Source: Convolutriloba macropyga
Taxonomy: Eukaryota
Length of the DNA: 64,000 bases
Assembly: GCF_964194025.1 (NCBI RefSeq)
Contig: NC_134473.1
Location: 40,548,001 to 40,612,000, forward strand
Reading direction: 5' to 3'
Both the position numbers and the translations under genes were made by a program. The notes below the pieces were generated by a model that ran no database searches, had not been told where the DNA came from, and worked only from the letters and a program-made list of their open reading frames with translations. Positions 23,221 through 63,649 of this stretch are shown here, in pieces (position 1 is the first letter of the stretch; each line of letters begins with the position of its first letter).

Positions 23221-23274
23221 TTATGTAAAAATTCCTGGAAAGCAATTCATTTTTTTGAACAATTTTATTTCACA

Positions 23275-27031: not shown

Positions 27032-27032
27032 A

Positions 27033-36500: not shown

Positions 36501-37881
36501 GAGTGCTTCAATTTCGACAAGAAAACTGGCTGTCGCCATACATTACACTAAATAGTGAAAAGCGGCAAGTTGCGTCAAACAAGTTTGAAGAGAACTTTTA
36601 TAAACTGATGAATAATGCAGTTTATGGTAAAAACTTCGAATCGAAAAGACGCAGAAATAAAATAACAATCTCACGAGATGCCGAGCATGCGCTGAAGATA
36701 ATATCCAGATTTGAGTTTGATCGCTATATGATCTTTGGGGAGAATTTAGCAGCCTTGACCACACGACCAAAGTCCATTTATTGGAACACTCCCACTATTG
36801 TGGGAGCGACTATATTAGATCTTGCAAAATTCCACATGTACTCATTCCATTACAATGTCATGCGCCCCAACTTTAATTGTCGCCTTCTTTACAGCGATAC
36901 AGATAGTCTCCTTTATGCGATAAAAAGCGACGATTTTTATACAGAGTTATCGCAGAAGCCTCAGTCAGTATTAAGTCATTTTGATTTCTCAAATTACCCA
37001 ACCAATCACTTTCTTTACGATACCACTAACAAAAGAGTCGTCCTCAAATACAAGGACGAATTCGCCGGCGACTATATTACTGACTTTATCTGTTTGAAGC
37101 CGAAGCTGTACTCCATCCTGTCAAAAAGTAAGTTTATTCTCTCATAAAACAAAATTGTTAGTTGTTGTATAAAAATTCGTATTGGGTTAATAGGCATCTG
37201 GAAGGTGTTAAATCGTATTATATTTACATAGGGGGTTAGTAATTATAATAGCACCTAATTTTTCTCATTTCTTTCTTTCTTTTAGGTTGTCGAAAACTTT
37301 CAGCAAAAGGGGTGACGAGGGCCGCACAACAACATCTTCGCCACGTCGACTTCCTAAACACTCTCAGCACTGGAAACCACCTGCGCTCAGAGAACACCAG
37401 GATTGTGTCCGACCACCACAGGCTGCAGACAGTTACTACAAACAAAATTTGTCTGTCAGCTTTTGACAACAAGCGCTATATACTACCCGATGGCACAAAA
37501 ACCCTCCCGTTTGGCCATTATGAAATTGTCGATTATGCTATCGATGAAATTGATTGGAATAACGACGATGTGGAATGGGATTATGACGATTTTAGCGACT
37601 TACTTTTGAGCTCTAGCCCAGATTGGGATAACAGTTTTGTTGTACCACATTCCTCTCCAGATACCACCCAAAGCTCCAACACATGGCAACCACCAGACCC
37701 CGGTTTTGTCGCTGCTCAGAATATAAATGATTCGGATATCGAAAGTAGCGATATCGTTGATTTCGATGCCAGTTTTGAAGAAAACTCTACGCCCGATAAT
37801 CCGTTCATTAATTTTGAGGCAGAAGAAGCAAGTGAAAGCGAGTCAGAGGGCCCAGTGTGCAAAACTGCAAGGCGATATTAG
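33536..37881 (+). CDS. Protein-primed family B DNA polymerase, two exons (33536-37127, 37286-37881; ~1395 aa)
   Basis: Three N-terminal C2H2 fingers; OTU-like DRDCFRYC...HHYVLI; exonuclease YFDFES, HNIQNYD; EndoVII-like CWIC...DHCHYSG...AHEKCN; motifs DANNLY, KLMNNAVYGK, YSDTDS, PKLYS. Exon 2 supplies KLSAKGV and DNKRY...TLPFGHY. Confidence 0.95.
37128..37285 (+). other. Spliceosomal GT-AG intron in pPolB (158 nt, phase 1)
   Basis: Donor A|GTAAGT, branch-like CTAAT at 37255-37259, pyrimidine tract and TTTAG acceptor; removal restores the frame. Confidence 0.88.
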
Positions 37882-38082
37882 TGTGCATAATTAAATTTAA
37901 TTGCCCAGAGAGAGACACGCAAAACTGAACCAGTATTGATTTTGCATGCAGTGTGATATTTGGTTTTAATTTAATTTGTTTGAGTGTTTTGAAATCAAAA
38001 GCAAGCGGCGAGACAGAAGGCAAAGTTAAAGGGAAACAAAAGCGGCAAGACTCAAAAGGGAATGATTGAATAGGAGAGGGAT

Positions 38083-38208
38083 ATAAACAGCGGCGGAAAG
38101 ATTTTATCCCGCCTATCCTATTCCCACTTAACCGCCACTACCTATTATCCTATGGTTAAGAGTCGAATGATAACCCCCCCTTTCTTTACGTAGGTATTAT
38201 ATACTACT
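38083..38208 (-). repeat. Right terminal inverted repeat of the Polinton
   Basis: Reverse complement of the left TIR; ends ACTACT, followed by TSD GAGGTA. Confidence 0.95.
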
Positions 38209-39109
38209 GAGGTATATCAAATTTCACACAGCGCTGATTAGTTTTCACAGTTTACAAAAAGAGCTATCGACGAAAAACGAGTATCTTTTTATTGATCAAG
38301 GAAGAAATGAAACCAAGGAACAGGCCACGGAAAAACACATATTAAACAAAACTTTATTTTCTGGGCCATCATGCAATCAGAAATTCATCGACTCTTTGCA
38401 TCATTTTTAAATATTCTGGATTTGGTTTTAAATTCTCAAATGGTTTAATAGTTTTTAACTGGTCGTCGGCATGTCGGTCCATTTTTACTATTGGGTATTA
38501 TCTTTGATTATCTCGGATTCTTCAGAGGTTTTTCAATCAGTTTTGCTCTTTTAACTCCTTTTTAAAAGCTGACGATTCCAGCATTGATTCATAAGTGTTG
38601 AAAATTGTGCTCATGGCAGAAATGTAGCGCAATCGATGAATCAGTTTTTGTAATTCAAAGCAGATTCACATCTTTGTGCTATGGTCAAAGGAGTGAGTGG
38701 AGTCAGTCAGAGTCTCAACAGAGAACTAAGAGTTTTTGTAGAGATCATAAGCGGCGCCTCGAAGGTCCAAAATCATCCAAATAAAATTACCTGAAAGAAA
38801 ATGTTGTGTTATTCGTGATACGAAAGTTTTCAAGAATATTTTGGTAGCATTGTTCCCCATTGTGCTAATGGTTATTAGAAATGACTAAACAAAGAGATAT
38901 TTGTTTGTCTTATTGAATAGCATATTGTGGTTACCTGGTACACTAAATACTACTTCATCTCATTATTTCAATGTCAATTTTTTATTCTTTTGAAGTTTTG
39001 AATTATAGCTAAATAATTGTTCCGTAACCGTGAACAAATTCATTTTTTCTCTATTTATTGTCTGCCCAAGTTGAATGAGGTCCCAGACGGCAGCAATAAT
39101 GTCCAGATC

Positions 39110-39250
39110 AAAATGAACGCACGAGGGGGCCGTCGTGCGTTCATAGTCTGGAAACAACGAAAAATGCACGAAAGTCTGAACATGAATGTACGAAAGTCTG
39201 GTGAACGCACCAAAGTCTGAACATGAACGCACGAAAGACTGGACATGAGC
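39110..39250. repeat. Short imperfect minisatellite (ATGAACGCACGAAAGTCTG-like)
   Basis: About five degenerate copies. Confidence 0.75.
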
Positions 39251-40000
39251 GTGTTTAAAGGTTGAGAGAGAACAACCTAAAGTAAATTGTACATGAGTTA
39301 AGCTTGACATAGCTTGACAAGAAGTTCTACTTGTTCATCGCGTACTTGGCTAGAGACATGAAGCCTTGAAGAACAAGAAAGAACGTGAGAACGGGTTATA
39401 AGAGATGCCCAAGTTAAGGAGCTTAAGAGCAGCTGGTGCAAATGGGCAGCAAACTAAGCTTGCAAGTAAAAGATGCTTGGCACTTTCAGAATGGGATGGT
39501 TCGGACAGACCTGCTTCCGTCTGGCACCTCAGCCTGGGATATTTGCAGATTCAACTTGGTCAGTTCGTAGGAGGATATGTAGCAATGATAGCCAAAGTCA
39601 TCCTGGACATTTTTGTTGGTTTGAAAAATAAAAATTGATTACTTTAGAGTCAATTTAGATCTTATCAATAATCGCCTCCCCTTTAGTAACTATAGTAGAA
39701 AATTTCCTCCACTTCTATACTATACTAAGATTTTTGCGTGAGCGTGCTGGTCAGATAAGCTCTTATTTGTCAATAATTTGCTCGCTTAAAATCTATTCAA
39801 GATTTGCCCCCACTTTTGTATTAGGGGAGGGGATTGTTGAAAGATGCGTTAAATTTTTAAGCGTTAAATGTTTTCCTTTATTCACCTTAAGCTATCATAA
39901 GAAATTTATAATGTATTGAAAAGTTTTTTTTCAGTGCCCACTTTGGTTAAGTTTTAAAGTTAAATTGTTCTAATTTCATGTTTTTTAGTTACTTTTCGAA

Positions 40001-41203
40001 ATGGATTTGAAAATCTCGCTTGTTTATATGTTTATTTTGTCATATTGCTCTATATTTTACCTCTCAGTTAACAACGGATACAATCAAAAACGCACCAAAG
40101 GCTACAATTCACTATCAGATAAACAAAATCACCAATATCACGAGACAGAGGAATCAAAAATTTCCAGGAAAACGAGATGTATGTCATCTAACTGGTCATT
40201 CAGAAACACAACCCACAAAAAAGCACCCATAACTTTCATGCCACCCGGGGACCAGCTTTTAATGCCCCAATCGTATAAAATTGAAATATGCGACACCACA
40301 AAAGCTAACTTACGTGTCCTTTTCTTTCTTAGCCGAATCAGCCAATCAGAACAGCGAAATGCTATTAGAAATACGTATGGTGCTTTCGATAAATATCTCA
40401 ATGACAGTTCCCTAGACGGTAACTGGTCGCTATTTTTTCTGGTCGGGAAACCATCTGGTCAGGTTGAAAGAAGTAATATGGAGAAAGAAGCCGAACAGTT
40501 TGGAGATGTAATTGTGGCGAACGTCAGTGAAGGTTACTACAGGACAACATACAAGCTATTAGTTGCAATAAAAGTAGTTTCGTGCTTTTGTCCAAATGCT
40601 GAGTATGTAATTAAAGCGGATGATGATACCTATCTTGTAATGAAGAAATTTGACAAAATGATTACATTTCATCAACAAATGGTCGATAAAGGCACGGTTG
40701 ATAGTGCTAGTCACCACATATCAAATTCTGTTATAAGCGAAGGACATCGAAATTTCTACACGGGAGCCGTTTGTGGGGACAAATATCAACCGCTGAAGAA
40801 AGGTCCGCAATTAGTGAAGAAGACAGAGTTTTCGGACGAATTTTACCCGTTTTTCTGTTTCGGACCATTCAATATTTTTACAATGCAATCTGTTCATAAG
40901 TTGGCTATTGACTGTCCACATCATTGCATAGGTCGAAAAGCGGAAGATTATGAAGAAAACAAAAGCAAGACATGTTTTCACAAATTTGAAGATGTGTTCA
41001 TTGGTTCATGTGTCGCAATCACTCAGCATGATGAAACGGTTTTGTCATATATCGATGAGAAACTGGGAGTTTATCTTGGCACTACGCGTGAAATGGGAAA
41101 AATACTACCTCCCGAGAATCATTTAGCCGTACATTGGAACAAAAAACCCGAACAGATGAGAAAAACTCACGAATTTTACCTCCGCAGAAACCTTTTGTAC
41201 TAA
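40001..41203 (+). CDS. GT31 family beta-1,3-glycosyltransferase (B3GALT/B3GNT-like), copy 1
   Basis: Type II N-terminal anchor, RNAIRNTYG, FLVG, E...FGDVI, KADDDTY (DxD), YPFFCFG, FEDVFIG; intronless CDS. Confidence 0.9.
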   Translation: MDLKISLVYMFILSYCSIFYLSVNNGYNQKRTKGYNSLSDKQNHQYHETEESKISRKTRCMSSNWSFRNTTHKKAPITFMPPGDQLLMPQSYKIEICDTTKANLRVLFFLSRISQSEQRNAIRNTYGAFDKYLNDSSLDGNWSLFFLVGKPSGQVERSNMEKEAEQFGDVIVANVSEGYYRTTYKLLVAIKVVSCFCPNAEYVIKADDDTYLVMKKFDKMITFHQQMVDKGTVDSASHHISNSVISEGHRNFYTGAVCGDKYQPLKKGPQLVKKTEFSDEFYPFFCFGPFNIFTMQSVHKLAIDCPHHCIGRKAEDYEENKSKTCFHKFEDVFIGSCVAITQHDETVLSYIDEKLGVYLGTTREMGKILPPENHLAVHWNKKPEQMRKTHEFYLRRNLLY

Positions 41204-43733
41204 TTGATAACAATTGCAGAATCAGGACATCTCTAGTGGCATTTAATTCGTAACAAAATGGCAATACTGTGAAATGAAAACTTTGCTTAGAATATTTGGA
41301 TTATATTTATTCAAGAACAATGCTTGACAATTCACAGAATATTGAAAGAGCTTAAGATATGACTTTTGTGTGAAATTTCCGCTTTGTCAGTATTTATCAT
41401 ATTAATTTGAAATAAAAACAAACACTCTGATACCAGAATTTTAATAAAATTTATGTATATTTCTAAATACCCCGCCAGCTCAATTGTTCATTAGAGGAAA
41501 AAACTAAATTGAGAGATTATATGAGAGATTTTTCAAAATTGAACTTGCATTTTATTTGATTAAAAGACCCGGACATGAAAACCCTACTATAGTCTCTACG
41601 TAGCACAAAAAGCTCCTTTAACGCCGAAGACATGTTCCCATCAACTATTCAAACTGGAAGCGCAAAATGCTACAAAACTGTAAATGATTATACCATTTGT
41701 TCGAAATCGTCAACATATTTTTCGTATTTTTTGTCATTGAATTTAAATATATATCTTTTTTTTGTAACAATATATCTGTTTATACACTAGACACCAGAAA
41801 TCTAGACCAAATAATTCAAATTTTCTGGATAATTTTTTGGAGGAGCCAAAATTTTGATTCGCACATTTTTTGTTCTCTGATATTCATGCCCTAGTTCAGA
41901 AAACGTCGCATGTAAACGTAAGAAAATTGTCGGTACGTTCGCTTCTCGACAAAAACGACGAAAGCCCTTACGTTTTTTTTTCTTTTCGATTTTTAAACGC
42001 AAGAGAATCGTTGATATGGTCGGTTTGAAACTACTAGAAATCATGACAACTAGATGACGGATGTATTTGACTCCTTATCATATCAAGATTCAGTGAGTGT
42101 GATTTGATGAACTGAAAGTTCAGGAAGTCTTATAAGTTCTTAAATTGAAAAAAAAATGTATTTGTTCAACTAGTCTCATAAATGAACTAAAGAAGAAAGT
42201 CATTTTTTGATGAGTTTGTTTCCAGCAGTTACGTTAGTAGGAACGTTTGATTAGAAATATATCTTAAAATTTGACTATATTATATACAAAAAACTAAAAT
42301 ATTTGTTCAGAAGAAACCAAGTATTATTTTACGTATAAAATTGAAGAACACACTAAGAGCTAAGAGACAGAACACACGGACAATTTTTTGCGTTCGAAAC
42401 CGAACATACCGACCATATCTGAGGTGAACTTGCGTACAGCAGGTCTCTAAAACACAGAATAACTAATACGTATTAAGAAAGAACTTAAAATCAAGAACCT
42501 ACTGAATGCTTTCAGAAGTTATCAAAATGATAAAAATGATCAGACCTCTATTTGTTGGCTTAAAATATACAATGGGCACATTGTTGCTGCTGGGGTTTTC
42601 TAAAGGTGAAATATTTAATTATCAAAACAATCTCGAAAATGCTTTTCTCATCCTATTAGAGAAATCTCGCTCAAAAATTTTATTCCATTTTTATCTGTGC
42701 AAACCTTGAATTGATTTTATTTGTAAAAAGTCCTTAATCTAACCACCTTGCTTATAGATATAATATTCCCGTGCGATCTTAAGTCTCTAAAGTCTCTGTA
42801 TCTAATGGCAGCCCTCGCACCAATGACAAGGAAAGTTTGACACCGCCCCGTTCAATTCAGTGGTTTCAATTTTGTCCGGTTATTACGATTTCGCCTTAAC
42901 TTTTGTGAACTGTATTATGGGCTACGCAGCAGATTAGGGTCGCATTTCCTGATTCTGAACGCACGAAAGACTGGACATTTAGCGTGTTTAAAGGTTGAGA
43001 GAGAACAACCTAAAGTAAATTGTACATGAGTTAAGCTTGACATAGCTTGACAAGAAGTTCTACTTGTTCATCGCGTACTTGGCTAGAGACATGAAGCCTT
43101 GAAGAACAAGAAAGAACGTGAGAACGGGTTATAAGAGATGCCCAAGTTAAGGAGCTTAAGAGCAGCTGGTGCAAATGGGCAGCAAACTAAGCTTGCAAGT
43201 AAAAGATGCTTGGCACTTTCAGAATGGGATGGTTCGGACAGACCTGCTTCCGTCTGGCACCTCAGCCTGGGATATTTGCAGATTCAACTTGGTCAGTTCG
43301 TAGGAGGATATGTAGCAATGATAGCCAAAGTCATCCTGGACATTTTTGTTGGTTTGAAAAATAAAAATTGATTACTTTAGAGTCAATTTAGATCTTATCA
43401 ATAATCGCCTCCCCTTTAGTAACTATAGTAGAAAATTTCCTCCACTTCTATACTATACTAAGATTTTTGCGTGAGCGTGCTGGTCAGATAAGCTCTTATT
43501 TGTCAATAATTTGCTCGCTTAAAATCTATTCAAGATTTGCCCCCACTTTTGTATTAGGGGAGGGGATTGTTGAAAGATGCGTTAAATTTTTAAGCGTTAA
43601 ATGTTTTCCTTTATTCACCTTAAGCTATCATAAGAAATTTATAATGTATTGAAAAGTTTTTTTTCAGTGCCCACTTTGGTTAAGTTTTAAAGTTAAATTG
43701 TTCTAATTTCATGTTTTTTAGTTACTTTTCGAA

Positions 43734-44936
43734 ATGGATTTGAAAATCTCGCTTGTTTATATGTTTGTTTTGTCATATTGCTCTATATTTTACCTCTCAG
43801 TTAACAACGGATACAATCAAAAACGCACCAAAGGCTACAATTCACTATCAGATAAACAAAATCACCAATATCACGAGACAGAGGAATCAAAAATTTCCAG
43901 GAAAACGAGATGTATGTCATCTAACTGGTCATTCAGAAACACAACCCACAAAAAAGCACCCATAACTTTCATGCCACCCGGGGACCAGCTTTTAATGCCC
44001 CAATCGTATAAAATTGAAATATGCGACACCACAAAAGCTAACTTACGTGTCCTTTTCTTTCTTAGCCGAATCAGCCAATCAGAACAGCGAAATGCTATTA
44101 GAAATACGTATGGTGCTTTCGATAAATATCTCAATGACAGTTCCCTAGACGGTAACTGGTCGCTATTTTTTCTGGTCGGGAAACCATCTGGTCAGGTTGA
44201 AAGAAGTAATATGGAGAAAGAAGCCGAACAGTTTGGAGATGTAATTGTGGCGAACGTCAGTGAAGGTTACTACAGGACAACATACAAGCTATTAGTTGCA
44301 ATAAAAGTAGTTTCGTGCTTTTGTCCAAATGCTGAGTATGTAATTAAAGCGGATGATGATACCTATCTTGTAATGAAGAAATTTGACAAAATGATTACAT
44401 TTCATCAACAAATGGTCGATAAAGGCACGGTTGATAGTGCTAGTCACCACATATCAAATTCTGTTATAAGCGAAGGACATCGAAATTTCTACACGGGAGC
44501 CGTTTGTGGGGACAAATATCAACCGCTGAAGAAAGGTCCGCAATTAGTGAAGAAGACAGAGTTTTCGGACGAATTTTACCCGTTTTTCTGTTTCGGACCA
44601 TTCAATATTTTTACAATGCAATCTGTTCATAAGTTGGCTATTGACTGTCCACATCATTGCATAGGTCGAAAAGCGGAAGATTATGAAGAAAACAAAAGCA
44701 AGACATGTTTTCACAAATTTGAAGATGTGTTCATTGGTTCATGTGTCGCAATCACTCAGCATGATGAAACGGTTTTGTCATATATCGATGAGAAACTGGG
44801 AGTTTATCTTGGCACTACGCGTGAAATGGGAAAAATACTACCTCCCGAGAATCATTTAGCCGTACATTGGAACAAAAAACCCGAACAGATGAGAAAAACT
44901 CACGAATTTTACCTCCGCAGAAACCTTTTGTACTAA
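43734..44936 (+). CDS. GT31 family beta-1,3-glycosyltransferase, copy 2
   Basis: Identical to copy 1 except I12V. Confidence 0.9.
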   Translation: MDLKISLVYMFVLSYCSIFYLSVNNGYNQKRTKGYNSLSDKQNHQYHETEESKISRKTRCMSSNWSFRNTTHKKAPITFMPPGDQLLMPQSYKIEICDTTKANLRVLFFLSRISQSEQRNAIRNTYGAFDKYLNDSSLDGNWSLFFLVGKPSGQVERSNMEKEAEQFGDVIVANVSEGYYRTTYKLLVAIKVVSCFCPNAEYVIKADDDTYLVMKKFDKMITFHQQMVDKGTVDSASHHISNSVISEGHRNFYTGAVCGDKYQPLKKGPQLVKKTEFSDEFYPFFCFGPFNIFTMQSVHKLAIDCPHHCIGRKAEDYEENKSKTCFHKFEDVFIGSCVAITQHDETVLSYIDEKLGVYLGTTREMGKILPPENHLAVHWNKKPEQMRKTHEFYLRRNLLY

Positions 44937-46760
44937 TTGATAACAATTGCAGAATCAGGACATCTCTAGTGGCATTTAATTCGTAACAAAATGGCAATAC
45001 TGTGAAATGAAAACTTTGCTTAGAATATTTGGATTATATTTATTCAAGAACAATGCTTGACAATTCACAGAATATTGAAAGAGCTTAAGATATGACTTTT
45101 GTGTGAAATTTCCGCTTTGTCAGTATTTATCATATTAATTTGAAATAAAAACAAACACTCTGATACCAGAATTTTAATAAAATTTATGTATATTTCTAAA
45201 TACCCCGCCAGCTCAATTGTTCATTAGAGGAAAAAACTAAATTGAGAGATTATATGAGAGATTTTTCAAAATTGAACTTGCATTTTATTTGATTAAAAGA
45301 CCCGGACATGAAAACCCTACTATAGTCTCTACGTAGCACAAAAAGCTCCTTTAACGCCGAAGACATGTTCCCATCAACTATTCAAACTGGAAGCGCAAAA
45401 TGCTACAAAACTGTAAATGATTATACCATTTGTTCGAAATCGTCAACATATTTTTCGTATTTTTTGTCATTGAATTTAAATATATATCTTTTTTTTTGTA
45501 ACAATATATCTGTTTATACACTAGACACCAGAAATCTAGACCAAATAATTCAAATTTTCTGGATAATTTTTTGGAGGAGCCAAAATTTTGATTCGCACAT
45601 TTTTTGTTCTCTGATATTCATGCCCTAGTTCAGAAAACGTCGCATGTAAACGTAAGAAAATTGTCGGTACGTTCGCTTCTCGACAAAAACGACGAAAGCC
45701 CTTACGTTTTTTTTTCTTTTCGATTTTTAAACGCAAGAGAATCGTTGATATGGTCGGTTTGAAACTACTAGAAATCATGACAACTAGATGACGGATGTAT
45801 TTGACTCCTTATCATATCAAGATTCAGTGAGTGTGATTTGATGAACTGAAAGTTCAGGAAGTCTTATAAGTTCTTAAATTGAAAAAAAAATGTATTTGTT
45901 CAACTAGTCTCATAAATGAACTAAAGAAGAAAGTCATTTTTTGATGAGTTTGTTTCCAGCAGTTACGTTAGTAGGAACGTTTGATTAGAAATATATCTTA
46001 AAATTTGACTATATTATATACAAAAAACTAAAATATTTGTTCAGAAGAAACCAAGTATTATTTTACGTATAAAATTGAAGAACACACTAAGAGCTAAGAG
46101 ACAGAACACACGGACAATTTTTTGCGTTCGAAACCGAACATACCGACCATATCTGAGGTGAACTTGCGTACAGCAGGTCTCTAAAACACAGAATAACTAA
46201 TACGTATTAAGAAAGAACTTAAAATCAAGAACCTACTGAATGCTTTCAGAAGTTATCAAAATGATAAAAATGATCAGACCTCTATTTGTTGGCTTAAAAT
46301 ATACAATGGGCACATTGTTGCTGCTGGGGTTTTCTAAAGGTGAAATATTTAATTATCAAAACAATCTCGAAAATGCTTTTCTCATCCTATTAGAGAAATC
46401 TCGCTCAAAAATTTTATTCCATTTTTATCTGTGCAAACCTTGAATTGATTTTATTTGTAAAAAGTCCTTAATCTAACCACCTTGCTTATAGATATAATAT
46501 TCCCGTGCGATCTTAAGTCTCTAAAGTCTCTGTATCTAATGGCAGCCCTCGCACCAATGACAAGGAAAGTTTGACACCGCCCCGTTCAATTCAGTGGTTT
46601 CAATTTTGTCCGGTTATTACGATTTCGCCTTAACTTTTGTGAACTGTATTATGGGCTACGCAGCAGATTAGGGTCGCATTTCCTGATTCTGAATTAGTCC
46701 CAATAAACAAAAACTTTTAGCATTGCTGTTTAACAAATTGCTTCGCACAGAATAACAGAT

Positions 46761-47078
46761 AGTAATGTCTAAACTTTGATTGGATGTAAAGTTAAGCCAT
46801 TTCTATTTAAACTTAGTTAAATCTTATTGGTGGAAAAATGCATGATTTATTATTGAATGAATAGCTTACCATTAGAAGGATTGGATTAGAAGAAGTGAAG
46901 TTGTAGAAAGATATTGTTTAATTTGAAAGAAGAAAGTTTAGATGGAATGTAGAAGAGAATTGATTATTAGAATTCGTTGTTTTGGGAAACTGCAGGAACC
47001 ACATCCGAAGACCTGAAATATATTCTTAATAATATCAGATACTTAACAAAAATTTAGTTTATTATTGCGAATATAAGT
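46761..47078 (+). repeat. 5' LTR
   Basis: AGTAAT...ATAAGT; one substitution seen relative to the 3' LTR; followed by TGGTGAC. Confidence 0.95.
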
Positions 47079-47085
47079 TGGTGAC
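47079..47085 (+). promoter_or_regulatory. Truncated primer-binding site (TGGTGAC)
   Basis: TGG directly after the 5' LTR; the rest is replaced by the rearrangement. Confidence 0.6.
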
Positions 47086-47093
47086 AATTCTGA

Positions 47094-47498
47094 TTAATAC
47101 GCAATTCTGATTAATAACCGTTAACTTATTAAAAATTATAGATACCCATTGCATGCGAAAATTTTGTACACAAACCATAACACCAAAAGCCGTCTTGTTA
47201 ATGTGGTTTCAAATTCTTTAATGAAGGAGTTTATAAATTAATAAGCAGTGTAACATCAAAATTAAAGAAGCGCAGAGTAATGTCTAAACTTTGATTGGAT
47301 GTAAAGTTAAGCCATTTCTATTTAAATTTAGTTAAATCTTATTGGTGAAAAAATGCATTATTTATTATTGAATGAATAGCTTACCATTAGAAGGATTGGA
47401 TTAGAAGAAGTGAAGTTGTATAAAGATATTGTTTAATTTGAAAGAAGAAAGTTTACATGGAATGTAGAAGAGAATTGATTATTAGAATTCGTTGTTTT
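47094..47498 (+). repeat. Ectopic copy of 3' UTR + PPT + partial third LTR (47276-47498)
   Basis: Matches 57266-57670 with about six substitutions. Confidence 0.92.
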
Positions 47499-48163
47499 CG
47501 AGACTGTGTGTAAAATCTGCGATTTCGAGAGTTTTCTATTCTTTATTGGCGAAGCTAATGAGATAGTTAGGTCTGGTAAATAAAGTAGACCCTTATAAGG
47601 ATGTATCACAATATTGTATTTGCGAAAGAATGGAAGGCCAAGTAACATTGAAGTTATATTTTGCAAGATCAAAAATTCTTCTCTAAACTGACAATTTCCA
47701 ATAGTTATTTGAATTTGAACACATTTTTCAACACGAACAACTCTTCCATCTGCCATTTTCACTGATTCGGGGAAAGGTTCTGACGATTTGAGGATCTTGC
47801 TCGGCTCCTTTTTCAATATCAAATTAAAGAGTTTAATTGGCAGTGCACTTGAAAATGCGCCTGTGTCTAATAAAGCGTTAATGTGGAAAGTATCAAAAAT
47901 AAGCGGTACATAGAAAAGTTTCTCTCCTTGTAAAGAAATTTTGCCTGTTTTACATGCTGGGACAATAGCCGTTAGATAATGTGGTTGATTCAGTTTTTTG
48001 ATGGGTTGTATCTGTTGAATGGGATGTTTGTCCCACGTTCCGGTAACGTTTTAAACCAACAGTCACTTCTTTTATGTCCTGGTTGTCCACAGCAGTGGCA
48101 TAATAGATTTCCTCTCCCTCGGTAGGAATTTGAAGTTTGATAGCGTTGTGAAGATTGCCAACG
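47489..48163 (-). pseudogene. Inverted fragment of gag C-terminus (CCHC knuckle) and aspartic protease
   Basis: CHCCGQPGHKRSDC; slippery A AAA AAC at 47999-47993 into the -1 frame; ALLDTGA and LLGLPFF. Confidence 0.9.
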
Positions 48164-51100
48164 ATACATCCAAACCAACAGGAAATTATTGAATGCAAGT
48201 CGATTAACCAGGACAGAGCTTACAAATACACTTCGGGACTGATAGAGCCGTCAATTCAATTCGAAAGTAAGTCAGGCCTTTGTATAATTCCTTCAATTAG
48301 CATATTAGATGGAAATTGCCGAACTCACATTGGAATCATGAATCTCAATCCGAATAAAATCACAATTACAGCAAAAACAAGAGTAGCTAAATTTGAGGTT
48401 CTAACATCAAAACAAGCATCTTTTATCAAACCAATTCACCCTTCACTTTGCAGTCTGATTAATACTAACGAGTACGAAAATAATTATCTTAAAACATCAA
48501 GTTACTTACGTCGACAAATCTTTTCCGAAAGGACTGATGGTTTTTGGTTCCCAACACCAGAAAATTGTAAAGACGCTTCAAAATTAATTGGGGTAGAGAA
48601 AAATATCTATGAATCTCTAATGAAGTTTAGGGAAGACGAAATGCTTGACCCAACCATTAATGACGCCAGCCGAAAAAAATTCCTAAGTAAATTCAGTTGG
48701 GATAAGTCAATATTCAACATTAGCCAAAAACGAAAAACGGAAGAGCTGCTAATGCGCTATCATAAAATTTTCGCACGACACCGACTAGATTTAGGGAAAA
48801 ACACCGACAGTCCAGTCAAGTTAACGCCTGAGCATAACCGTCCTGTATATTCTCCTAATGCGATCACTCCGATACATTTACGTGATGAATTAATTATTGA
48901 ACTCGCATTTATGCAATACTACGATATCATAACAACGCTTCCATTTTCAAAGTATTCTTCGCCAATCTTTGCCCAACGAAAGTCGAGTGGAAAACTGCGA
49001 ATTCTGATTGATCTTAGAAAAATAAACCACTTACTTCGACATGACTACTCGAATCATAGTTTTCCTATTCCGACGATGGCTGATGCCAGTGCTCATCTAG
49101 CAGGTAAATCAATTTTTGCAAAAATGGATTGCAGCCAAGCTTACTTTTCGATGCAAATGGCAGATGAGTTGAGTATTCAATTAACCGCATTTAATTTTGG
49201 CTGGCGTACATTTGCTTTCAAGCGACTTGCGCAAGGCGTAAGCAGATCGCCTCCAGCCTTCAGTGCTTGTGTAAACAAACACCTTCATGCATGCGTTGCA
49301 AGCGACAGATGCTTTGTTTATTTCGATGATTTAGGTTCAGGAGCAATCGATGGAGATGCACTTATTGAAAACTTGGAACAAATTTTTATTAAAATAAAAA
49401 GCCTGGGATTCAAATTGTCAATCGAAAAATGTGAATTCGGAATACCTGAAATTAATTTCCTTGGCCATACCATAACAGGAGATGGCATTAAACCAAATAA
49501 AGATAAATTAGAAAAATTTCTGAAAACAGTAAAACCACCCAAATCTGTAAAACAAACAAGAAGATTAATTGGTTTTCTTCAATACTTCCAAAAATTTATT
49601 CCGAATTTGGCTGAAGAATTGCAACCGTTCTTTAAGCTACTACGAAAAGAAAGCACATTTATTTTAACATCAGAACATCATAATAGCCTTGAGAAACTGA
49701 AAGATGACCTCAAAAATGCGTGTTCATTGTCATTGAAGATGGCAAAACCAAACTGTCAATTCGTTATTTTGTGTGACGCAAGCTTCTATGCAGCTGGATT
49801 TGTATTACTCATTGAAGATTACTCTATGCCCAATAATACCAGCTCAGGAAAATCTTACGCACCAGTAGCCTTTGGTTCACATTTGTTTTCCCCAGCACAG
49901 TTAAAACATTCAATCTATGTCAAAGAATTCCTTAGTGTACAGTATGCTTTTGAAACGTTTGAACATTACATATGGGGAGTCTCAACCAAGCCCATTATAG
50001 TGCTAACAGACAACAAAAGCGTAACACGTTTCTTTCAAGCCAAGCGGCTACCGGGCAAACTTTGGAACGCTGTTGACTACGTGCTTTCATTCAACTTTGT
50101 CTTAGGCCATATTCCAGGCAAGGCAAATGCAGCTGCAGATTATTTGTCTCGCGTACACATAAACCCAGCAACAAAAATGAAACTTAAGTTAGAAGATCAA
50201 ATACCATTACACAAAATACGAATTGAAGTGTTATCAAATACACCAGATAATTCAATAACCTCTGTATATAATAGTGAAGAAATCGAGTCAGAACCTACTC
50301 AATACAAACTTCCAGAAATCACGGTTACAAATACAAATGAAATCGAAGAAGAAATTACAGAACTGAGTTCAATACATTGTAGTCAAATTTGTACACTCTC
50401 GGAAGAAAACCCACTGGATAAATTAGATTTGAGTTAAAGCTTAGTACCACTAAATATTGAGAGAGAGCAACGTAATGATCCAGACATAGTAAAAGTGAAA
50501 ACATGGATACACAACAAAATTAAACCGGAAACCACTTATTCAACGTATGACTTGAAGAAATACCACAAACACCTTAGCCGTTTAATACTAGAAAATGGTA
50601 TACTGTATAGAAAGTTTTTTGATCATACAGGACAAAACTACCATAAACAGTTGGTTGTTCCTAAACACTTACGAACAGAGTTACTGTACCGTGTTCACAA
50701 TAGTAAAATGAAGGGACACTTGGGAATACAAAAAACAGTACGTGAATTCCGCCGGAAGTACTATTTTCCAGGCTTCATTGATTTTCTAGTGGTGTACATT
50801 AATAACTGTTTAACATGTGCGCAAGCAAAATCTCCTCAGCACAAATACTTAACACCACCATTAAATCCAGTTAGTTCCAACACAAGCCTACCAGCTGATA
50901 TGCTTCAAATAGACATTGTAGGAAAATTACCTCATAGCGGTGGATACTCATATATTTTGACTGGAATGGACGTTTTCACAAAATACATGTTTGCGCAACC
51001 ACTAACTTCAGTTTCAGCAGAAACAGTAGCAAAATATCTTGTACAATGGTTCATGCGACATTCATATATTCCGCTTTTAGTAGTTACAGATCAAGGTACC

Positions 51101-52345
51101 CAGTTTGTTTCAAAATTACTCCAAGAACTTGCGGAAATTTTAGAAATAAAACTTGAGCACGCTACAGTAAAGCACGCACAAACAATTGGTGTAATTGAAC
51201 GATCCCATGGACCACTGAAACGCTATCTAAGGATTTATGAAAATCAATTACAACACGATTGGCATAAGCACATAGACCTAGCAGTATTCCAACATAATAC
51301 TAGTTACCATACAACTATTGGTTGCCCACCAACTCTACTTTTTCATGGTCGAATACCAATAAACCCAATAGATGTTAGGTTTAACAACAGAACATTGTAT
51401 CATCACAGTAGCAAATATGACTACATATCAGATTTACAGAGCAAAATGATGACACTTTTCGGGCAAACAAAAGAATTACTTGTGAAATCTTTTAATAAGT
51501 ATAAGGAATACTATGACAGAAAAGCAGCAGCTGTGCCACTCAAATTAAATGACTATTGTGTTATGCTAAACCCAAAACTGTCTAACGAACACGAGAAAAT
51601 CAGCAACTTACAATGTAAATGGAATGGATTATACCGCATTGAGAAAGTTCTTTCCAGAAGCAATTATGTAGTCAGAAAAGTTAATACCAACCATACGCAA
51701 ATAGTCCATAGAGTTCGATTAAAACCTATTATACCACAGTATGAAGTAAAAGACCTTACTAATATTGACAGTAAACAATTTATTCCAGATCCATTAGTGC
51801 CTGAAGCATTACGAGAACCAGAACTTTTCGACAATAGTTTAGAAGATATGCTTTATAATCCATGGGATTTAAATAGAGTAACCAAAGTCGAAACAAAAAT
51901 ACCACAACTTAAATTGAATGAGCAACAAAACGAAAACACTCCAGGAAGAAGAACAACTGAATCAAGTGTTTCTAATAGCGCAACACAATCAAGTACTGAA
52001 TCATCAAATTCAATCTTTAAGACTCCAGAATCAATTGGAAACGATCAAGTTCATTCAACACCAAATTCAGAAATTTCAAGTCCAAAATCGACTAATATTA
52101 GAAATATTGTTCCCCCATCTGAACCAAAAGCACCTGTATCAAATTTGTCTAAAATAATTGCAGAAAAAAGAGCTGAAAGAGCAGCGCAGTCAAGTAGTAG
52201 TAATTCAACTGTACTTACAACAGCCCAAAAACCAGCTCAAACAACTGTATCAGTACAAGTTCAACAACCATCACCACAAGCTGCAAACACAGTTTCACAA
52301 TATGGTCGTGTCAGGAAGCAGACACAACATTTTCAGTCTAGTTAA
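48156..52345 (+). pseudogene. pol: pol (RT, RNase H, integrase) with one in-frame nonsense codon at 50435-50437
   Basis: LRILIDLR, KMDCSQAY, YFDD, CDAS, TDNKS, NAAADYLSR; HHCC, QIDIVG, VTDQGTQF, IERSH. Confidence 0.95.
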
Positions 52346-52755
52346 GACGTTTTTCTTACAAATACTTATCCTATTTTCATTACTATAACATTATTTCTAT
52401 AAAACACTGAATAATTTGAAAACGACTATGTTCATATATTCCTTTCCTCAAATAACTATTTTGCACACTGAATGAACACCAACCATTCCAAACTTGCCTC
52501 CAGCAAAACTATGCATTTAACACTTTGAAGGGAAAGTTATCGACATTATTATCCCTGATTATTCATGTTTCCAACAATAGTTCTATTAGGAAAACATACA
52601 AAAATTCAATTATCTCGAGTTACAATAAAAAAAATGAAAAATCCGCCTGCATACGATTGTAGCCTAGGGTTTTGTGCAATTAATGAACCTATTCTCATTA
52701 TCGCAACTTTTATGTGCTAGCAGCGTAAATTATAAAACTTTATAAAAACGTACTT

Positions 52756-53025
52756 TTATTGAGAAAATTGGTTATTTTCTCGCTGTTGAATTTCAACTCC
52801 AGCCCGACATGTTTGATCTGCAGTCCACATATTCTCTACGCGGTAGAAATTGACTAAATGCAGTTCATTTACTGCTGCACAATCTCTTCCAAGACCACGG
52901 TGTAACCTCAATTGGAGGTTTTCTAAACAGCATAAAATCGAATTTTCCACCGTAATATTCCTATATGCACTTACATATTCCCCTATATCAAATTTTACCT
53001 GTTTCTTTATTTCGTTTTTCTTCAT
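52756..53025 (-). CDS. Possible third antisense accessory ORF
   Basis: ATG-initiated, 89 aa, overlaps the end of the AT-hook ORF; no motif recognised. Confidence 0.3.
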   Translation of the reverse strand: MKKNEIKKQVKFDIGEYVSAYRNITVENSILCCLENLQLRLHRGLGRDCAAVNELHLVNFYRVENMWTADQTCRAGVEIQQRENNQFSQ

Positions 53026-54134
53026 ATTTGGCTTTCTGACCAGGAAGGAAGAAACTGCGTTTACGATTTTTGCTTGAGCCCGCAGGGCGGCCGCGTTTAC
53101 TTGTACTAGTGGTAATAACTACATTTTGGCCAGACGAAGCATAAGATTGTAAATGTTCAGTTATTCCACTGTTCTTTCCATGTTGTTTATCTCGAAAGCT
53201 ACTCCATTCAGCAGCTCCCTTTATGCCATGAACTATTAACCCTAATAACCAGACTTTAGAAGGCATTGTTCTGCAAACCATTTCCATAATTACTCAGCGT
53301 TTCTTGTGCGCGACTAGTATCATTTACGTTATTTGCTTCCCAACCCAAGACAAGTGAAGGACCGGTTGTGAAGGATAAAACTGCATGCGCGCATAAAGCA
53401 GGCTGGCAAAGGAAATGAGATTTGTTTGGAATGTAATAGTACATGGAATGTTTGTATTTATCTGGTCCACTCTTTACAAATTGAATGAAATTCTTGACAC
53501 TTCTAAAATGCCTTTCTAACAATACACTTTCTTTACCACGGTTAGAAATTATGAATAACTTTTCACCAACAGGGGTATATGAAATTGAATCCTTACCACC
53601 AGTTTCAACGTGACCATCTGTATAATACGGATTAAATTGAAACAATGCATCAAAATTAGTAAAAGTTAACGATTCAGGAATAGAAAAAGTACATAAATTC
53701 AACATAGAAAAACTTACAGAAAACGAATGTTCATTTAAATCAAAATCGGGACATGAATGAGTCTGATAAATTCGTGATTCACGGCAATGGTTTATCACAG
53801 TTGAAGGTAGGGTGTAATAATTATCAACAATTTCACGGAATTGATTAGCATTGCTAATGTTCTCCACATCGTTTAGAAAGGAATTATCAATTTTAAATAA
53901 CTCGTGATTTGTTATTGCAACGGGTAATTTCATCCAGCCGTTATTTATTAAATTATTGACACCTTGCTTATTAAACTCGGTCATAACATCAGACCAATTT
54001 GAAGCGCCTTGAACATCAATATTTGGCACAGGTTTCCAGCCGATTGATTGTAAAGTTGATTCATTATAAAAATTGTCCTTAAATAATTTGATTTCTTCAT
54101 ACAAGGACAGCGAAAAATTTCGTGTATTTGGCAT
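52988..54134 (-). CDS. JmjC (KDM2/KDM7-like) 2OG-Fe(II) oxygenase with probable C-terminal AT-hook; 1-nt frameshift near 53258
   Basis: YTDGHVETGG...GEKLFII...QPALCAHAV gives T172/H175/E177/K192/H250. The overlapping downstream frame has KRGRPAGSSKNRKR. Confidence 0.8.
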
Positions 54135-54241
54135 AGTTTATCTTAAAGAAAATTATTCATTATTACAAAAAAAATATTGCTGTTTACCACTAAACCTCTA
54201 GAAAATTTGAGTTCCGCTGAAAGATTAAATTTCATAGGTAC

Positions 54242-54517
54242 TTAGCAAAAGTACAACAAAAGGGCAGCAATTAAACATGGCCAGCAGCAGACACACAGAA
54301 CACAGGCCAAAGAAAGCAACCACAAATACTGCCAGACAGAAGACTCCACTACCTCTGACACGCAGGGATACTCCACGCTATTCGCGGTGAAGACAACCAC
54401 CCCAGACTCCAAGAATATAGTTGCATCTTTGCAACACAAAACTTTTGTTTCTTTATCAACGTTAATCTCATTACAGGCCGAAGCCAACATAAAGAAGAAC
54501 ACAAAGAAACGAAACAT
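54242..54517 (-). CDS. Small Cys-rich type I membrane protein (antisense accessory ORF)
   Basis: Signal-like MFRFFVFFFMLASAC, ~45-aa ectodomain with Cys residues, hydrophobic WQYLWLLSLACVLCVCCWPCLIAALLLYFC. Confidence 0.6.
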   Translation of the reverse strand: MFRFFVFFFMLASACNEINVDKETKVLCCKDATIFLESGVVVFTANSVEYPCVSEVVESSVWQYLWLLSLACVLCVCCWPCLIAALLLYFC

Positions 54518-55049
54518 ATTTCAACTGAAAACATACTTACCATTAGTGATGAATTCAAAATAATTCCATACTTTACGTTACAACACAGAAGACACTGAAA
54601 ACAGACATATTATTCATCAATTAACAAAATATTTGGATTTTTGTGCAAACTACATGTTACAAGGTGAGGTCTTGTCTAGACCAACACTATTCTTAGAATA
54701 CTACAATAACAAACACTAAACTTCGCTGATTAAACATCTACGACGAAACAGCAAAGTTACACGCTACGCTTAAACAAGAGGGCTTTTGGCAATTGGAATG
54801 TGAAAAACTAAACCTAGAGCTATTTTGAAAACAAAATTAATACTGCAGGATATTTATTCAAAAAGTCTGATCACCTACAGATGTTATTAACAGAGCCCAG
54901 AGATATTTTCTTGAAAGTCTCATAGTTTGAGGATATTATTTCTAATTAAAATGGCTTGATGAAAACTCAGTAGGTCATAAACTATTCTTAGCCTGGCCAC
55001 CTAAGGATCAAATTTAAATCCTACCAAAACACTGTCATATTCTCTCAAA

Positions 55050-57282
55050 ATGGTTTCCATAGTTTACCTGAGTCTAATAGTTACAGCAAATATTTTATCA
55101 AGTCATTGCGAATATCAGAACAACGGCATAGAATTTGTTTATCAACAAAAACTTTTGTTAGCTGAAAAATTTATTAACGTTCAATTTTTGGTTCCCTTGC
55201 CAAAACTAAATGAAACAATTGACGAGCAAATTAAATATCTTACAACAACATTATCAAATGCTTGGAGCAAATACGAATTCGGCTGCGACTTGTCAAATAT
55301 GTCAACGAATGAAACATCGCTCAACTTTGAATTAATTTCAAAACACGTTGAAAAACAATTACTAGCAGCCAAAGTCGACATAAAGGAACTTCAGGAAGAA
55401 CTTTTCGAAACGATGGGATCAACTAAAACAATGAGGAATTACTCAGCTAATAGAAACAAGAGAGGAGCTGGCTTAATAGCATGTGGAGCATTAACTGCAT
55501 TATCAGCAGGGGCAGGCATTGCATGTTCATTAGGGTCAATATTTGGAGGTTGCGGAGGATCAAGTCACAGTCAAGATGATATTGACTATGCCTTGCAGGA
55601 ATTAGAAGAAAATAAATACCGCTGGACTGAGGTCAACTCAAAACTGAACGAAAAATTTTTCATAATTGCTTCGCAAATGAAAGATATACAGAAAACGCAA
55701 TCACTTCTTATTGAAACACAGAAAAACCATACCATAACTTTAAACAGTGCCATCGATCTACTTAACAACAACACGAGACGCTTAATGGCGTGCAATCAGT
55801 ATTTCTACGCACGAGACGAGATGCTACAAGTTCAAACAAATTTGGCAGCTTCACTTGCAATTAACAATGAAATTAAAGCTTACAGAGTTGCTGTTTACGC
55901 CTACAAACTAAATTTACTGAATTCTGTCATGTCAATGGTTAACAAAGTGATACCGATGTCTTTACTACCACGATTGATGCTATTTGAAATTCTTCAAAAA
56001 GTAGCTTTAACCCAAGTTCACCAAACAGACAGATTGACACTTGCTATTCCAACGAATCAGATTCTCACGTATTACGAGACAAAAATTTTAACAAATGTTG
56101 CTGTAGTCAATTCAGGAATGATTTTCACCTTAGCAGTACCTTTTGCATCTGGTTCGACAGCTCTGAACTTATATAGAGCAACTCCAGTGCCCATGCTCAA
56201 CGGAGGAGAAGATGGTTACGCGTCTCAGTACGAATTGGAATCAAATTACATTGCAATAGCTGAATCTACAAACCGCATAGCATTACTCTCACAGCCACAA
56301 ATTGACAATTGTGTGGGCTCCAGTAGTTTTTCTGTATGCATAAATGGATTCTCATTGGAAACCGCAGAAAACACGTGTCTAGGTTCACTATTAATTGGCA
56401 ATCAGTTCTCAGCGTTACAAAACTGTAATATCTTAACTGTCAAACTCCCTATTAAAGAAAAAGCAAAGAATCTCGGCAATGGTAAATGGCTGATAACATC
56501 TTCCAGCAAAAACTTTGATATTTTTCTCAGCGATTTGAAAAATACTGATCATCTTAAACGAACAAAACTTCCTGGATGTCAAGTATGTGTGTTAGAATTG
56601 AAATGTGGAACAAAAATCGAGACTAGTTCAATGGAACTGAGAGCAGATGTTTTCTTGCAAAAACGATAGTGCGATAAAAATCGACATTAAACTAGCAGAT
56701 CCTCTGCAGCATCTCTTCAGTAAGCTTCCAGATTTATCAGAACTTCCACATATTTCATCAATGTCTGAAGCTCGCAAACAAATTATTGAAGAAGTTCAAT
56801 TAGAAATGTTAATGGTGCCCCAATTTCACAGAAAATCGCTTGTCAAATTAGACGAAATCTCTGAACCTATTATTCAAAACATGAAGAAGTTGAGGCCAAG
56901 TATTCAGAACAAATTTCGAGAAGCTGGAACTTGGAAAATGTCCTTAACGATTGGGTTCTGTTCTTTCTGTATTTCATTACTATTGCACTTTGGACTCACG
57001 TATGCTTTACAATGTTATCGTCAACGCTATGCTAGAGTTATTACATCGGTGGTTGGTGAAAAGAGAATTGAATCAAAACCGATTTTGGTTGTCTCTGCAG
57101 CAGACCATCAGTATTTACAATTACATCCTATGAGTAAACTTGCGAACAACAATATTGTTTTGAGTGAACAACAGTTGAAACAACTTTTTAATCTGACAAA
57201 TCAAGAGAGTGCTCCAGTAGACTTAGACAATATGCAACTTGTTTGTAAACAAATCGCGCGAAGCCTTAATACGCAATTCTGA
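55050..57282 (+). pseudogene. env: env: class I fusion glycoprotein (baculovirus F/errantivirus-like), frameshift near 56650
   Basis: Signal peptide, furin site RNKR, fusion peptide GAGLIACGALTALSAGAG, heptads, Cys-rich region. The TM segment LTIGFCSFCISLLLHFGLTY lies in the second frame. Confidence 0.9.
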
Positions 57283-57447
57283 TTAATAACCGTTAACTTA
57301 TTAAAAATTATAGATACCCATTGCATGCGAAAATTTTGTACACAAACCATAACACCAAAAGCCGTCTTGTTAATGTGGTTTCAAATTCTTTAATGAAGGA
57401 ATTTATAAATTAATAAGCAGTGTAACATCAAAATTAAAGAAGCGCAG

Positions 57448-57765
57448 AGTAATGTCTAAACTTTGATTGGATGTAAAGTTAAGCCATTTCTATTTAAACT
57501 TAGTTAAATCTTATTGGTGGAAAAATGCATGATTTATTATTGAATGAATAGCTTACCATTAGAAGGATTGGATTAGAAGAAGTGAAGTTGTAGAAAGATA
57601 TTGTTTAATTTGAAAGAAGAAAGTTTAGATGGAATGTAGAAGAGAATTGATTATTAGAATTCGTTGTTTTGGGAAACTGCAGGAACCACATCCGAAGACC
57701 TGAAATATATTCTTAATAATATCAGATACTTAACAATAATTTAGTTTATTATTGCGAATATAAGT
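57448..57765 (+). repeat. 3' LTR
   Basis: Preceded by purine-rich AAAGAAGCGCAG (PPT); followed by TSD CAGAT. Confidence 0.95.
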
Positions 57766-57779
57766 CAGATATTGCTCGG

Positions 57780-57942
57780 NNNNNNNNNNNNNNNNNNNNN
57801 NNNNNNNNNNNNNNNNNNNNNNNNNNNNNNNNNNNNNNNNNNNNNNNNNNNNNNNNNNNNNNNNNNNNNNNNNNNNNNNNNNNNNNNNNNNNNNNNNNNN
57901 NNNNNNNNNNNNNNNNNNNNNNNNNNNNNNNNNNNNNNNNNN
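57780..57942. other. Assembly gap (N run)
   Basis: Run of n. Confidence 1.
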
Positions 57943-62329: not shown

Positions 62330-63649
62330 CCCGGGTCGAGGTGTCACCACCATTCAACGCAAAATTATGTAAGATAAGCGGTGAATGCGGTCAAATTAGA
62401 TAAATCAGGCGGTGAATGCGGTGAAAAAAAACCTTTATCGCCTGGTAGCGTTAAATTACATAAATTCACCGCTTTGAAAAAAGTGTCCTAATTGTGTAAG
62501 ATAAGCGGTAAATACAATGAAATTACATAAATTCACCGCTTAACCTAGTGGTGAATTTACATAAATTCACCGCTTAGAAAAAAGTGTTTAAATTGTGTGA
62601 GAACAGCAGTGAATGCGGTGAAATAACATAAATTCACCGCTTAACTTAGTGGTGAACTTACATAAATTCACCGCATGAAAAAATTTTAGAAATTGTGTAA
62701 GAACTGCATTGAATGCGATCAAATTACATAAATTCACCGCTTGGAAAAAAGTGTTTAAATTGTGTGAGAACACCAGTGAATGCGGTGAAATTACATAAAT
62801 TCACCGCTTAACTTATTGGTGAACTTACATAAATTCACCACTTACAAAAGAGTGCTAAAATTGTGTGATACCGCTCAACTTAGTGGTGAAACAACATAAA
62901 TTCACCGCTTAACTTAGTGGTGAACTTTCATAAATTCACCGCATGGAAAACTTTTTTTGAAATTGTGTAAGAACTGCATTGAATGCGGAGAAATTACATA
63001 AATTCACCGCTAAACTTAGCGGTGAAATTACATAAACACGCCGCTAAGACAAAAAGTGTTAAAATTCTGTGAGACCGCTCAACTTAGTGGTGAAATAGCG
63101 TAAAATCACCGCTTAGAAACGCTTCGAATTGTCTGTTCAACGAAGTTAAGGTACACTTATTAAAAGACGAACGAAAAATTTACCCACAAATGGTCATACA
63201 TCTTTTCGAAACTTTTTAAAGCGGTGAATTTATCTAAATTCACCACTAGAGTAAGCGGTGAACTTACAAAAAATAACCACATTTCACCGCTAAAATTTGT
63301 AATTTCACCGCTAATCTTACAAAACTTCAACGCGTATATTTTACAAAAAGTAGAGTGAATTGATTTAAATTCAAAAAATATGCTAGAAATTAGTGAGAAA
63401 TTGCGCAGAGGAAGAAGAAGTGGCTGACGTGCAGGAGATGAAAGGTTTGAATCCGTACAAGGTGGGTAGCGTTTAGTAAGCGGTGAAATGTGGTGCATTT
63501 TTTAAGTTCACCGCTTACTCTAGCGGTGAACTTTCAAAATTTCACCGGATTCACCGCATTTCACCGCAAAATTATGTACAAAATTTGCGGTGAAAAACCA
63601 TTTTTCACCGCTTATCTTACATATTTTTCCGATTTTTCTTCGACCCGGG
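62330..63649. mobile_element. Non-autonomous DNA transposon (CMC/EnSpm-like), 1320 bp
   Basis: TIR CCCGGGTCGA...TCGACCCGGG, 2-bp AG flanks, subterminal inverted ATGTAAGATAAGCGGTGAA / TTCACCGCTTATCTTACAT, and dozens of TTCACCGC motifs in both orientations. Confidence 0.8.

Follow-up and report, generated by a model that had tools for sequence, protein, structure and literature searches.

Can a retroelement carry its own enzyme against the chromatin marks with which its host silences it? Retroelements and retroviruses carry accessory genes, and their hosts silence them through histone and DNA methylation. The question of a chromatin-modifying accessory gene is raised by a 64,000-nucleotide stretch of chromosome 6 of the acoel Convolutriloba macropyga (OZ077304.1, assembly GCA_964194025.3; NC_134473.1, positions 40,548,001 to 40,612,000), referred to here as the window. 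In this window, a long terminal repeat (LTR) element of the Ty3/gypsy type with an env-like gene contains, between pol and env, an open reading frame (ORF) on the opposite strand. An original prediction, made by a model from the letters of the window and the translations of its ORFs, had read this ORF as a JmjC demethylase-like gene with an AT-hook, and the whole as a candidate self-encoded anti-silencing system. In this study, we found that this ORF forms the catalytic portion of an accessory gene that is conserved in a lineage of env-carrying Ty3/gypsy elements of acoels. Its product is predicted, from a structural model, to be a JmjC-fold Fe(II)/2-oxoglutarate oxygenase that consists of little beyond the catalytic core and has an apparently intact active site. 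We regard it as highly probable that a gene for a JmjC-fold oxygenase is an integral part of the element.

One gene in two reading frames

The ORF for the catalytic core lies at 53256-54134 on the minus strand and encodes 292 amino acids; both the ORF and the two strings of residues quoted from it in the original prediction were found as stated. Given the local base composition, for which the probability of a stop is 0.069 per minus-strand codon, the chance that 292 codons stay open is ~8e-10 per start. Over the whole window this amounts to an expectation of ~7e-6, by which a chance ORF was rejected. A protein search returned 14 relatives of the window ORF. P0001, which is 96% identical to the window protein, is a single ORF of 378 amino acids that extends across both the 292-residue ORF and a second window ORF of 99 residues (52988-53287, minus strand), and the latter carries the basic KRGRPAGSSKNRKR stretch with an RGRP motif. 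P0007 (47% identical) and P0009 (38% identical) have 390 and 394 amino acids, respectively, so that the uninterrupted ORF of natural siblings measures 378-394 amino acids. The aligned siblings continue beyond the end of the 292-residue ORF with a helical region and then with a basic tail, which is the window ORF at 52988-53287. Because natural siblings have a single 378-residue ORF over both, the two window ORFs are parts of one gene, and since P0001 is 100% covered by the window in two frames (tblastn), the window gene contains one frameshift. Intact 378-residue versions were found on at least three further contigs. The extension of the ORF into a tail, originally proposed to give about 381 amino acids after removal of one base, is thus seen without any such correction in the natural siblings.

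Predicted fold and active site

The fold of the protein was modelled by AlphaFold2 with the natural sibling P0001 as query and 130 family sequences as alignment, which gave a predicted local distance difference test score (pLDDT) of 94.3 and a predicted template modelling score (pTM) of 0.90. An earlier AlphaFold run with 15 sequences reached a pLDDT of 60, and its fold matches, at E ~0.02, pointed the same way. When the P0001 model was compared with the PDB by Foldseek, the best 50 matches, which are those considered here, were all JmjC oxygenases. Ranks 1-27 were taken by PHF2, KDM7A, the Caenorhabditis elegans KDM7A (ceKDM7A), KDM2A, and PHF8 (E 2e-9 to 2e-7, probability 1.00), and the next matches were JMJD5, FIH, and JMJD6 (E 2e-7 to 5e-7), and also KDM5B. 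These results argue for the JmjC/cupin fold that had been proposed from residue patterns. Among predicted viral structures, the best matches were cupin/JmjC proteins of giant viruses and AlkB-type domains, and none of them came from a retroelement.

The family is large: when 1.84 billion cluster representatives were searched exhaustively with a profile, 228 of them (50% identity) were retrieved at E<=0.001. Among 36 family members, the Pfam JmjC profile touched only one, P0156 (E 0.0098, 16.8 bits versus a cut-off of 24, profile positions 9-105 of 114), and the gathering score of this profile was reached by neither the window ORF nor P0001 nor P0156.

The residues T172, H175, E177, K192, and H250 occupy the positions given in the original prediction, and in the alignment of 36 members all five belong to the columns that hardly vary. 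Counted over 84-101 informative family members, decayed fragments included, T172 is retained in 86%, H175 in 87%, E177 in 87% (with Asp in another 5%), K192 in 89%, and H250 in 87%. In a weak alignment with PHF2 (E 0.9), residues 168-219 of the window ORF place T172, H175, E177, and K192 on Thr, His, Asp, and Lys. A likewise weak alignment of P0156 with JMJD6 (E 1.2) brings His, Glu, Lys, and the distal His all into register. Judged from these sequence patterns, H175, E177, and H250 apparently form the predicted metal triad, and K192 and T172 are apparently the predicted 2-oxoglutarate residues. The earlier claim that all Fe(II) and 2-oxoglutarate ligands look intact agrees both with the high conservation of these columns and with their register in the two weak alignments.

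Of 43 family tails, 41 have a basic cluster, and the RGRP motif, with its GRP core, occurs in 11 of the 43, including the tail ORF of the window and siblings of several lineages. The general feature of the tail, as read from its sequence, would therefore be a basic, nuclear-localisation-like character, with the AT-hook-like motif as an addition in some lineages. Of the tail originally described, the basic, nuclear-localisation-like part holds for nearly the whole family, whereas the AT-hook is limited by the 11 of 43 tails. Pfam, which had been suggested as a check on both domains, scored neither JmjC nor AT_hook on the window ORFs, and the tail ORF had no match to the AT_hook model.

Architecture of the element in the window

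The element spans 46761-57765 (11,005 bp), and its features are as follows.

46756-46760, no strand: left target-site duplication of 5 bp, CAGAT (direct reading)
46761-47078, plus strand: 5' LTR of 318 bp, 99.7% identical to 57448-57765
47079-48154, plus strand: leader and gag region, rearranged, with gag largely lost in the window copy
48155-50437, plus strand: pol part 1, reverse transcriptase (RT) and RNase H, 760 amino acids (Pfam RVT_1, RT_RNaseH, RT_RNaseH_2)
50495-52345, plus strand: pol part 2, integrase (IN), 616 amino acids (Pfam Integrase_H2C2, rve, Integrase_p58_C)
52988-54134, minus strand: antisense gene for the predicted JmjC oxygenase (siblings, AlphaFold model, conservation, selection)
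54135-55049, no strand: spacer of 915 bp between the divergent JmjC and env-like genes (position only)
55050-57282, plus strand: env-like gene with one frameshift, in overlapping ORFs of 539 and 211 amino acids (55050-56669 and 56647-57282)
57283-57447, plus strand: 3' untranslated stretch with a purine-rich run just 5' of the 3' LTR
57448-57765, plus strand: 3' LTR of 318 bp, 99.7% identical to the 5' LTR
57766-57770, no strand: right target-site duplication, CAGAT, matching the left copy (direct reading)

The antisense ORF is therefore placed where the original prediction had put it, inside the LTRs and the target-site duplication and between pol and env, since the LTR pair, the CAGAT repeats, and the integrase and env-like ORFs were all located. 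The Ty3/gypsy order of an LTR pair with target-site duplication, gag, protease, RT, RNase H, and IN was found, with gag only as remnants in the window and intact in the sibling loci L001 and L005. Immediately 3' of the 5' LTR is a primer-binding-like stretch that begins with TGG. Sibling gag proteins are covered over 0-37% of their length in the window (tblastn). Part of the element's 3' end, some of the LTR included, is repeated within the same region, 47079-48154. A run of N (57780-57942) starts 15 bases past the 3' LTR.

The two parts of pol lie in one frame with exactly one in-frame stop between them, both in the window (48155-52345) and in L001 (L001:11711-15796). As this layout is common to the window copy and the young, 70%-identical L001, it may reflect programmed read-through. 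Because the JmjC gene and the env-like gene contain one frameshift each and gag is largely lost, the window element is a dead copy, of a family which has intact members.

Intact env-like siblings (P0184, P0188, and P0191) have 745 amino acids, and P0184 is matched over 100% of its length by two frames of the window (tblastn), which corresponds to one frameshift. The 745-residue protein has a signal-like N-terminus, an R-x-K/R-R motif at residue 135, a hydrophobic segment at 139-161, and a membrane anchor at 632-655; it had no Pfam match and no sequence match in the PDB. The F-type envelopes described in a survey of metazoan env-carrying Ty3/gypsy elements (Chary & Hayashi, eLife 2026, PMC13524379) have a signal peptide, a furin-type site with a hydrophobic peptide behind it, and an anchor, and the env-like protein apparently resembles them in these features. 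The description as an env-bearing Gypsy element of errantivirus type holds as far as a Ty3/gypsy element with an env-like gene is meant. It does not hold for an insect errantivirus in the strict sense (Metaviridae), which was rejected because the host is the acoel C. macropyga, to whose chromosome 6 window 38000-44203 is 100% identical. The window element thus extends env-carrying Ty3/gypsy elements to Xenacoelomorpha.

A conserved slot under purifying selection

The same antisense slot is filled in six loci, which represent at least four deeply diverged element lineages and two samples. In L001, L005, L011, L013, and L014, the order is gag, protease, RT/RNase H, integrase, antisense JmjC gene, and env-like ORF. 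The JmjC proteins of these loci compare with the window protein as follows.

L001 (P0007): 47% identical
L011 (P0002): 82% identical; decayed copy
L013 (P0026): 32% identical
L005 (P0017): 31% identical
L014 (P0019): 26% identical

For two of the loci, the other genes were compared with the window as well.

Window versus L001: RT 70%, IN 60%, env 54-75%, JmjC 47% identical
Window versus L005: RT 42%, IN 50%, env 33-37%, JmjC 31% identical

The LTR pairs of L001 and L005 are 99-100% identical and enclose all genes, and these two loci are therefore young, apparently complete elements. The gag proteins of L001 and L005 are 29% identical. The divergence of the JmjC gene has kept pace with that of the other genes of the element, gag and env among them.

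Between the subfamily of the window and that of L011, the ratio of nonsynonymous to synonymous substitutions (dN/dS) is 0.18-0.20 at a dS of ~0.5 (Nei-Gojobori method), whereas among 98%-identical copies it is ~1.1, as expected for neutral decay after insertion. The JmjC gene is thus under purifying selection between subfamilies. The check on siblings that had been suggested, namely whether the fused gene is intact in them and has a dN/dS below 1, turned out in favour of the gene, with intact 378-residue ORFs on several contigs alongside the low ratio.

Furthermore, the slot appears to be kept filled even when its content changes. The LTR, gag, pol, and env of L005 match those of L014 at 93-96% identity, yet the 2.9-kb JmjC segments of the two elements (L005:9147-12023 versus L014:9391-12379) have no nucleotide match, and the encoded proteins are 40% identical. 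It follows that the cassette was swapped through recombination, with the slot remaining occupied.

In a sibling that is ~98% identical (L002/L003; ENA ERZ25071359, contig ctg37948), four tandem units of 4.1 kb were observed. Each unit corresponds to window 51197-55312, from the middle of the integrase to the start of env, and contains an intact 378-residue JmjC ORF. This array could be a real amplification of the cassette or an effect of assembly.

Distant members of the family (L004, L008, L009, and L010) stand alone on gene-sized Logan contigs of 1.1-1.5 kb, with neither pol nor env in their short flanks. P0113 occurs on near-identical contigs of 1545 and 1546 bp from two runs. These short contigs could be transcripts; however, they are not proof of transcription, because poly(A) was not seen at their ends.

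Proposed role and alternative explanations

How might such a gene serve the element? An internal promoter in the 915-bp spacer, shared head to head with env, would have to transcribe the gene, which the LTR promoter cannot do. The protein would then enter the nucleus and remove repressive methyl marks at element copies, most likely from histone lysines of the H3K9 or H3K27 type, and the removal of these marks would counteract transcriptional silencing by the host. The use of a histone demethylase against silencing is a tentative reading, to which we give somewhat less than an even chance. When the JmjC oxygenase gene and the anti-silencing demethylase are taken together as a single explanation, that whole is slightly favoured over its negation. 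A wider version, in which an internal antisense promoter supplies the whole env-carrying lineage with a histone demethylase of its own, the enzyme erases repressive lysine methylation guided by small RNAs, and the cassette is kept and even swapped between lineages, we consider doubtful.

Several results weigh against this explanation as a whole. The window ORF had no Pfam match at E<=1, P0001 had none either, and PDB sequences gave nothing significant by phmmer or by profiles of 15 or 36 family members. Because there is no significant sequence match to a JmjC profile or structure, the assignment rests on predicted structure, and the TM-scores of the Foldseek matches are moderate (0.36-0.44). 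The model is best read as a member of the KDM2/7 demethylase branch and not of the hydroxylases, yet this placement is not secure because JMJD5, FIH, and JMJD6 trail by only one to two orders of magnitude in E. No PHD, CXXC, F-box/LRR, or other Pfam domain was found in the 36 members, and hence no domain that reads histones or targets DNA. Tethering of the protein to the AT-rich DNA of the LTR would be at best specific to some lineages, since only 11 of the 43 tails contain the RGRP core. As for expression, a motif scan for a promoter of the antisense gene found no TATA-like motif, and the scan found only one AATAAA, 227 nt past the JmjC stop. Moreover, the genomic RNA would be bound by any antisense mRNA through base pairing, which might feed RNA interference.

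The alternative that survives best is a JmjC hydroxylase that acts on a protein or RNA of the host or the element, in the manner of JMJD6, FIH, JMJD5, the ribosomal oxygenases, or TYW5, and that aids a step of the life cycle other than the escape from silencing. The strong structural matches to JMJD5, FIH, and JMJD6 fit this alternative, as does the fact that the sole sequence alignment over both metal motifs, albeit a weak one, is to JMJD6; a histone-reader domain was not found by Pfam. Nevertheless, the 27 best structural matches are all demethylases of the KDM7/KDM2 type, PHF2 is the only near-threshold sequence match of the window ORF itself, and the basic tail points to the nucleus or chromatin. 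We therefore consider a hydroxylase unlikely, though it is the alternative to be taken most seriously.

A second alternative dispenses with catalysis or turns the gene against the element: the protein may be a chromatin-binding factor, as proposed for Epe1, or the antisense transcript may regulate the genomic RNA. Some JmjC proteins do act non-catalytically, and the antisense layout necessarily yields RNA complementary to the genomic RNA. However, no position of the family is better conserved than the residues for the metal and the co-substrate, and it is hard to see why this should be so if catalysis played no part; a role of the RNA only is opposed by the dN/dS of ~0.2, which concerns the protein and not only the RNA. 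Such a role is quite improbable in our estimation. Finally, a passenger without any role for the element, be it a host gene fragment, a nested insertion peculiar to the window copy, or a chance ORF, might be suggested by the frameshifted gene, the defective element, and the lack of a Pfam domain, but it is scarcely credible in view of the slot filled in six loci, at least four lineages, and two samples, the 228 cluster representatives at E<=0.001, the intact 378-residue ORFs on several contigs, and the dN/dS of 0.2, and a passenger peculiar to the window copy was rejected on the same slot, the intact siblings, and the selection.

If the anti-silencing demethylase is real, a retroelement-borne JmjC oxygenase would represent a direct chromatin-level counter-measure to silencing. 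The conserved slot, the selection, and the exchange of the cassette make this idea testable, and C. macropyga has both a chromosome-level assembly and strand-specific RNA-seq, which is listed under BioProject PRJEB75559.

Comparison with known systems

The cellular proteins closest in structure are those of the KDM7 group (PHF2, PHF8, KDM7A/KIAA1718, and C. elegans KDM7A) together with KDM2A/JHDM1A, which the modelled protein resembles over nearly its whole length and in the H-x-D/E...K...H pattern. Unlike these, however, the retroelement protein has only ~380 amino acids and a short basic tail, lacks PHD, CXXC, F-box, and LRR domains, and is only 12-17% identical to them. For the capture of a demethylase gene that had originally been proposed, no cellular donor came to light, and the family has diverged beyond the reach of Pfam. 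Because Pfam does not see it, this family at present goes without annotation in genomes. Among viral proteins, the structures that matched best were a cupin-like protein of Marseillevirus (E 2e-7) and a JmjC protein of Gaeavirus; these matches are weaker than the cellular KDM7 ones, and they belong to large DNA viruses rather than to retroelements.

The elements called errantiviruses in a wide sense (PMC13524379) have the LTRs, the gag-protease-RT-RNase H-integrase order, and the third sense ORF in common with the elements described here. In contrast to them, the acoel elements contain a conserved fourth gene, on the opposite strand between pol and env. That survey makes no mention of an antisense gene, of JmjC, of a demethylase, or of an acoel host. 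Plant Retand/Tat elements, with their aORFs (PMC11963269, PMC7264820), and elements of bdelloid rotifers, with their ORF3 captures (PMC5408684), also have an extra gene after pol and before the 3' LTR, in some cases in antisense orientation. Those elements are alike in carrying modular cargo that is exchanged between lineages. Their cargoes differ in kind, being of no assigned function, a GDSL esterase, a DEDDy exonuclease, or env-like, and none of them is JmjC; no mention of JmjC or of a dioxygenase was found in the text searched for these terms.

As to the proposed logic, VANC of Arabidopsis VANDAL21 is reportedly a transposon gene that, by way of a loss of DNA methylation, releases the elements of its family from silencing; it differs from the present gene in not being an oxygenase. 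Epe1, a JmjC protein of fission yeast that opposes H3K9-methyl heterochromatin (PMC6576747), differs in being a host gene. Taken together, VANC and Epe1 show that a logic of the proposed anti-silencing kind exists. The nearest precedent in concept is a mobile element that carries an Fe(II)/2-oxoglutarate dioxygenase: fungal DNA transposons encode TET/JBP dioxygenases, an enzyme family that removes a silencing mark (PMC12730594). These differ from the acoel elements in being DNA transposons of fungi, and their enzymes belong to another branch of the superfamily, act on DNA bases, and are not JmjC.

The original prediction knew of no described errantivirus with such a gene, and our search of the literature, which in its searchable form leaves out some journals, likewise brought up no LTR retroelement with a reported JmjC gene. 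In that literature, precedents were found only in the TET/JBP DNA transposons and in non-enzymatic plant examples. An accessory gene of an LTR retroelement is itself a known kind of gene; what is new here is its enzymatic cargo, a JmjC oxygenase by prediction.

Other features of the window

Rfam and tRNA scans of the window gave no match. Upstream of the element, the segments 39248-42055 and 42981-45789 are 100% identical to each other and repeat in tandem every ~3.73 kb, and each unit contains an intronless galactosyltransferase ORF of 400 amino acids (40001-41203 and 43734-44936; Pfam Galactosyl_T). Several successive plus-strand ORFs at 21777-28493, one of them with an integrase core (24967-26166; Pfam rve), are probably what is left of another retroelement. 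At 33536-37147, a plus-strand ORF encodes 1203 amino acids with no Pfam match. Near the end of the window, at 62453-63071, is a tandem array with five copies of a ~101-bp unit that are 64-100% identical.

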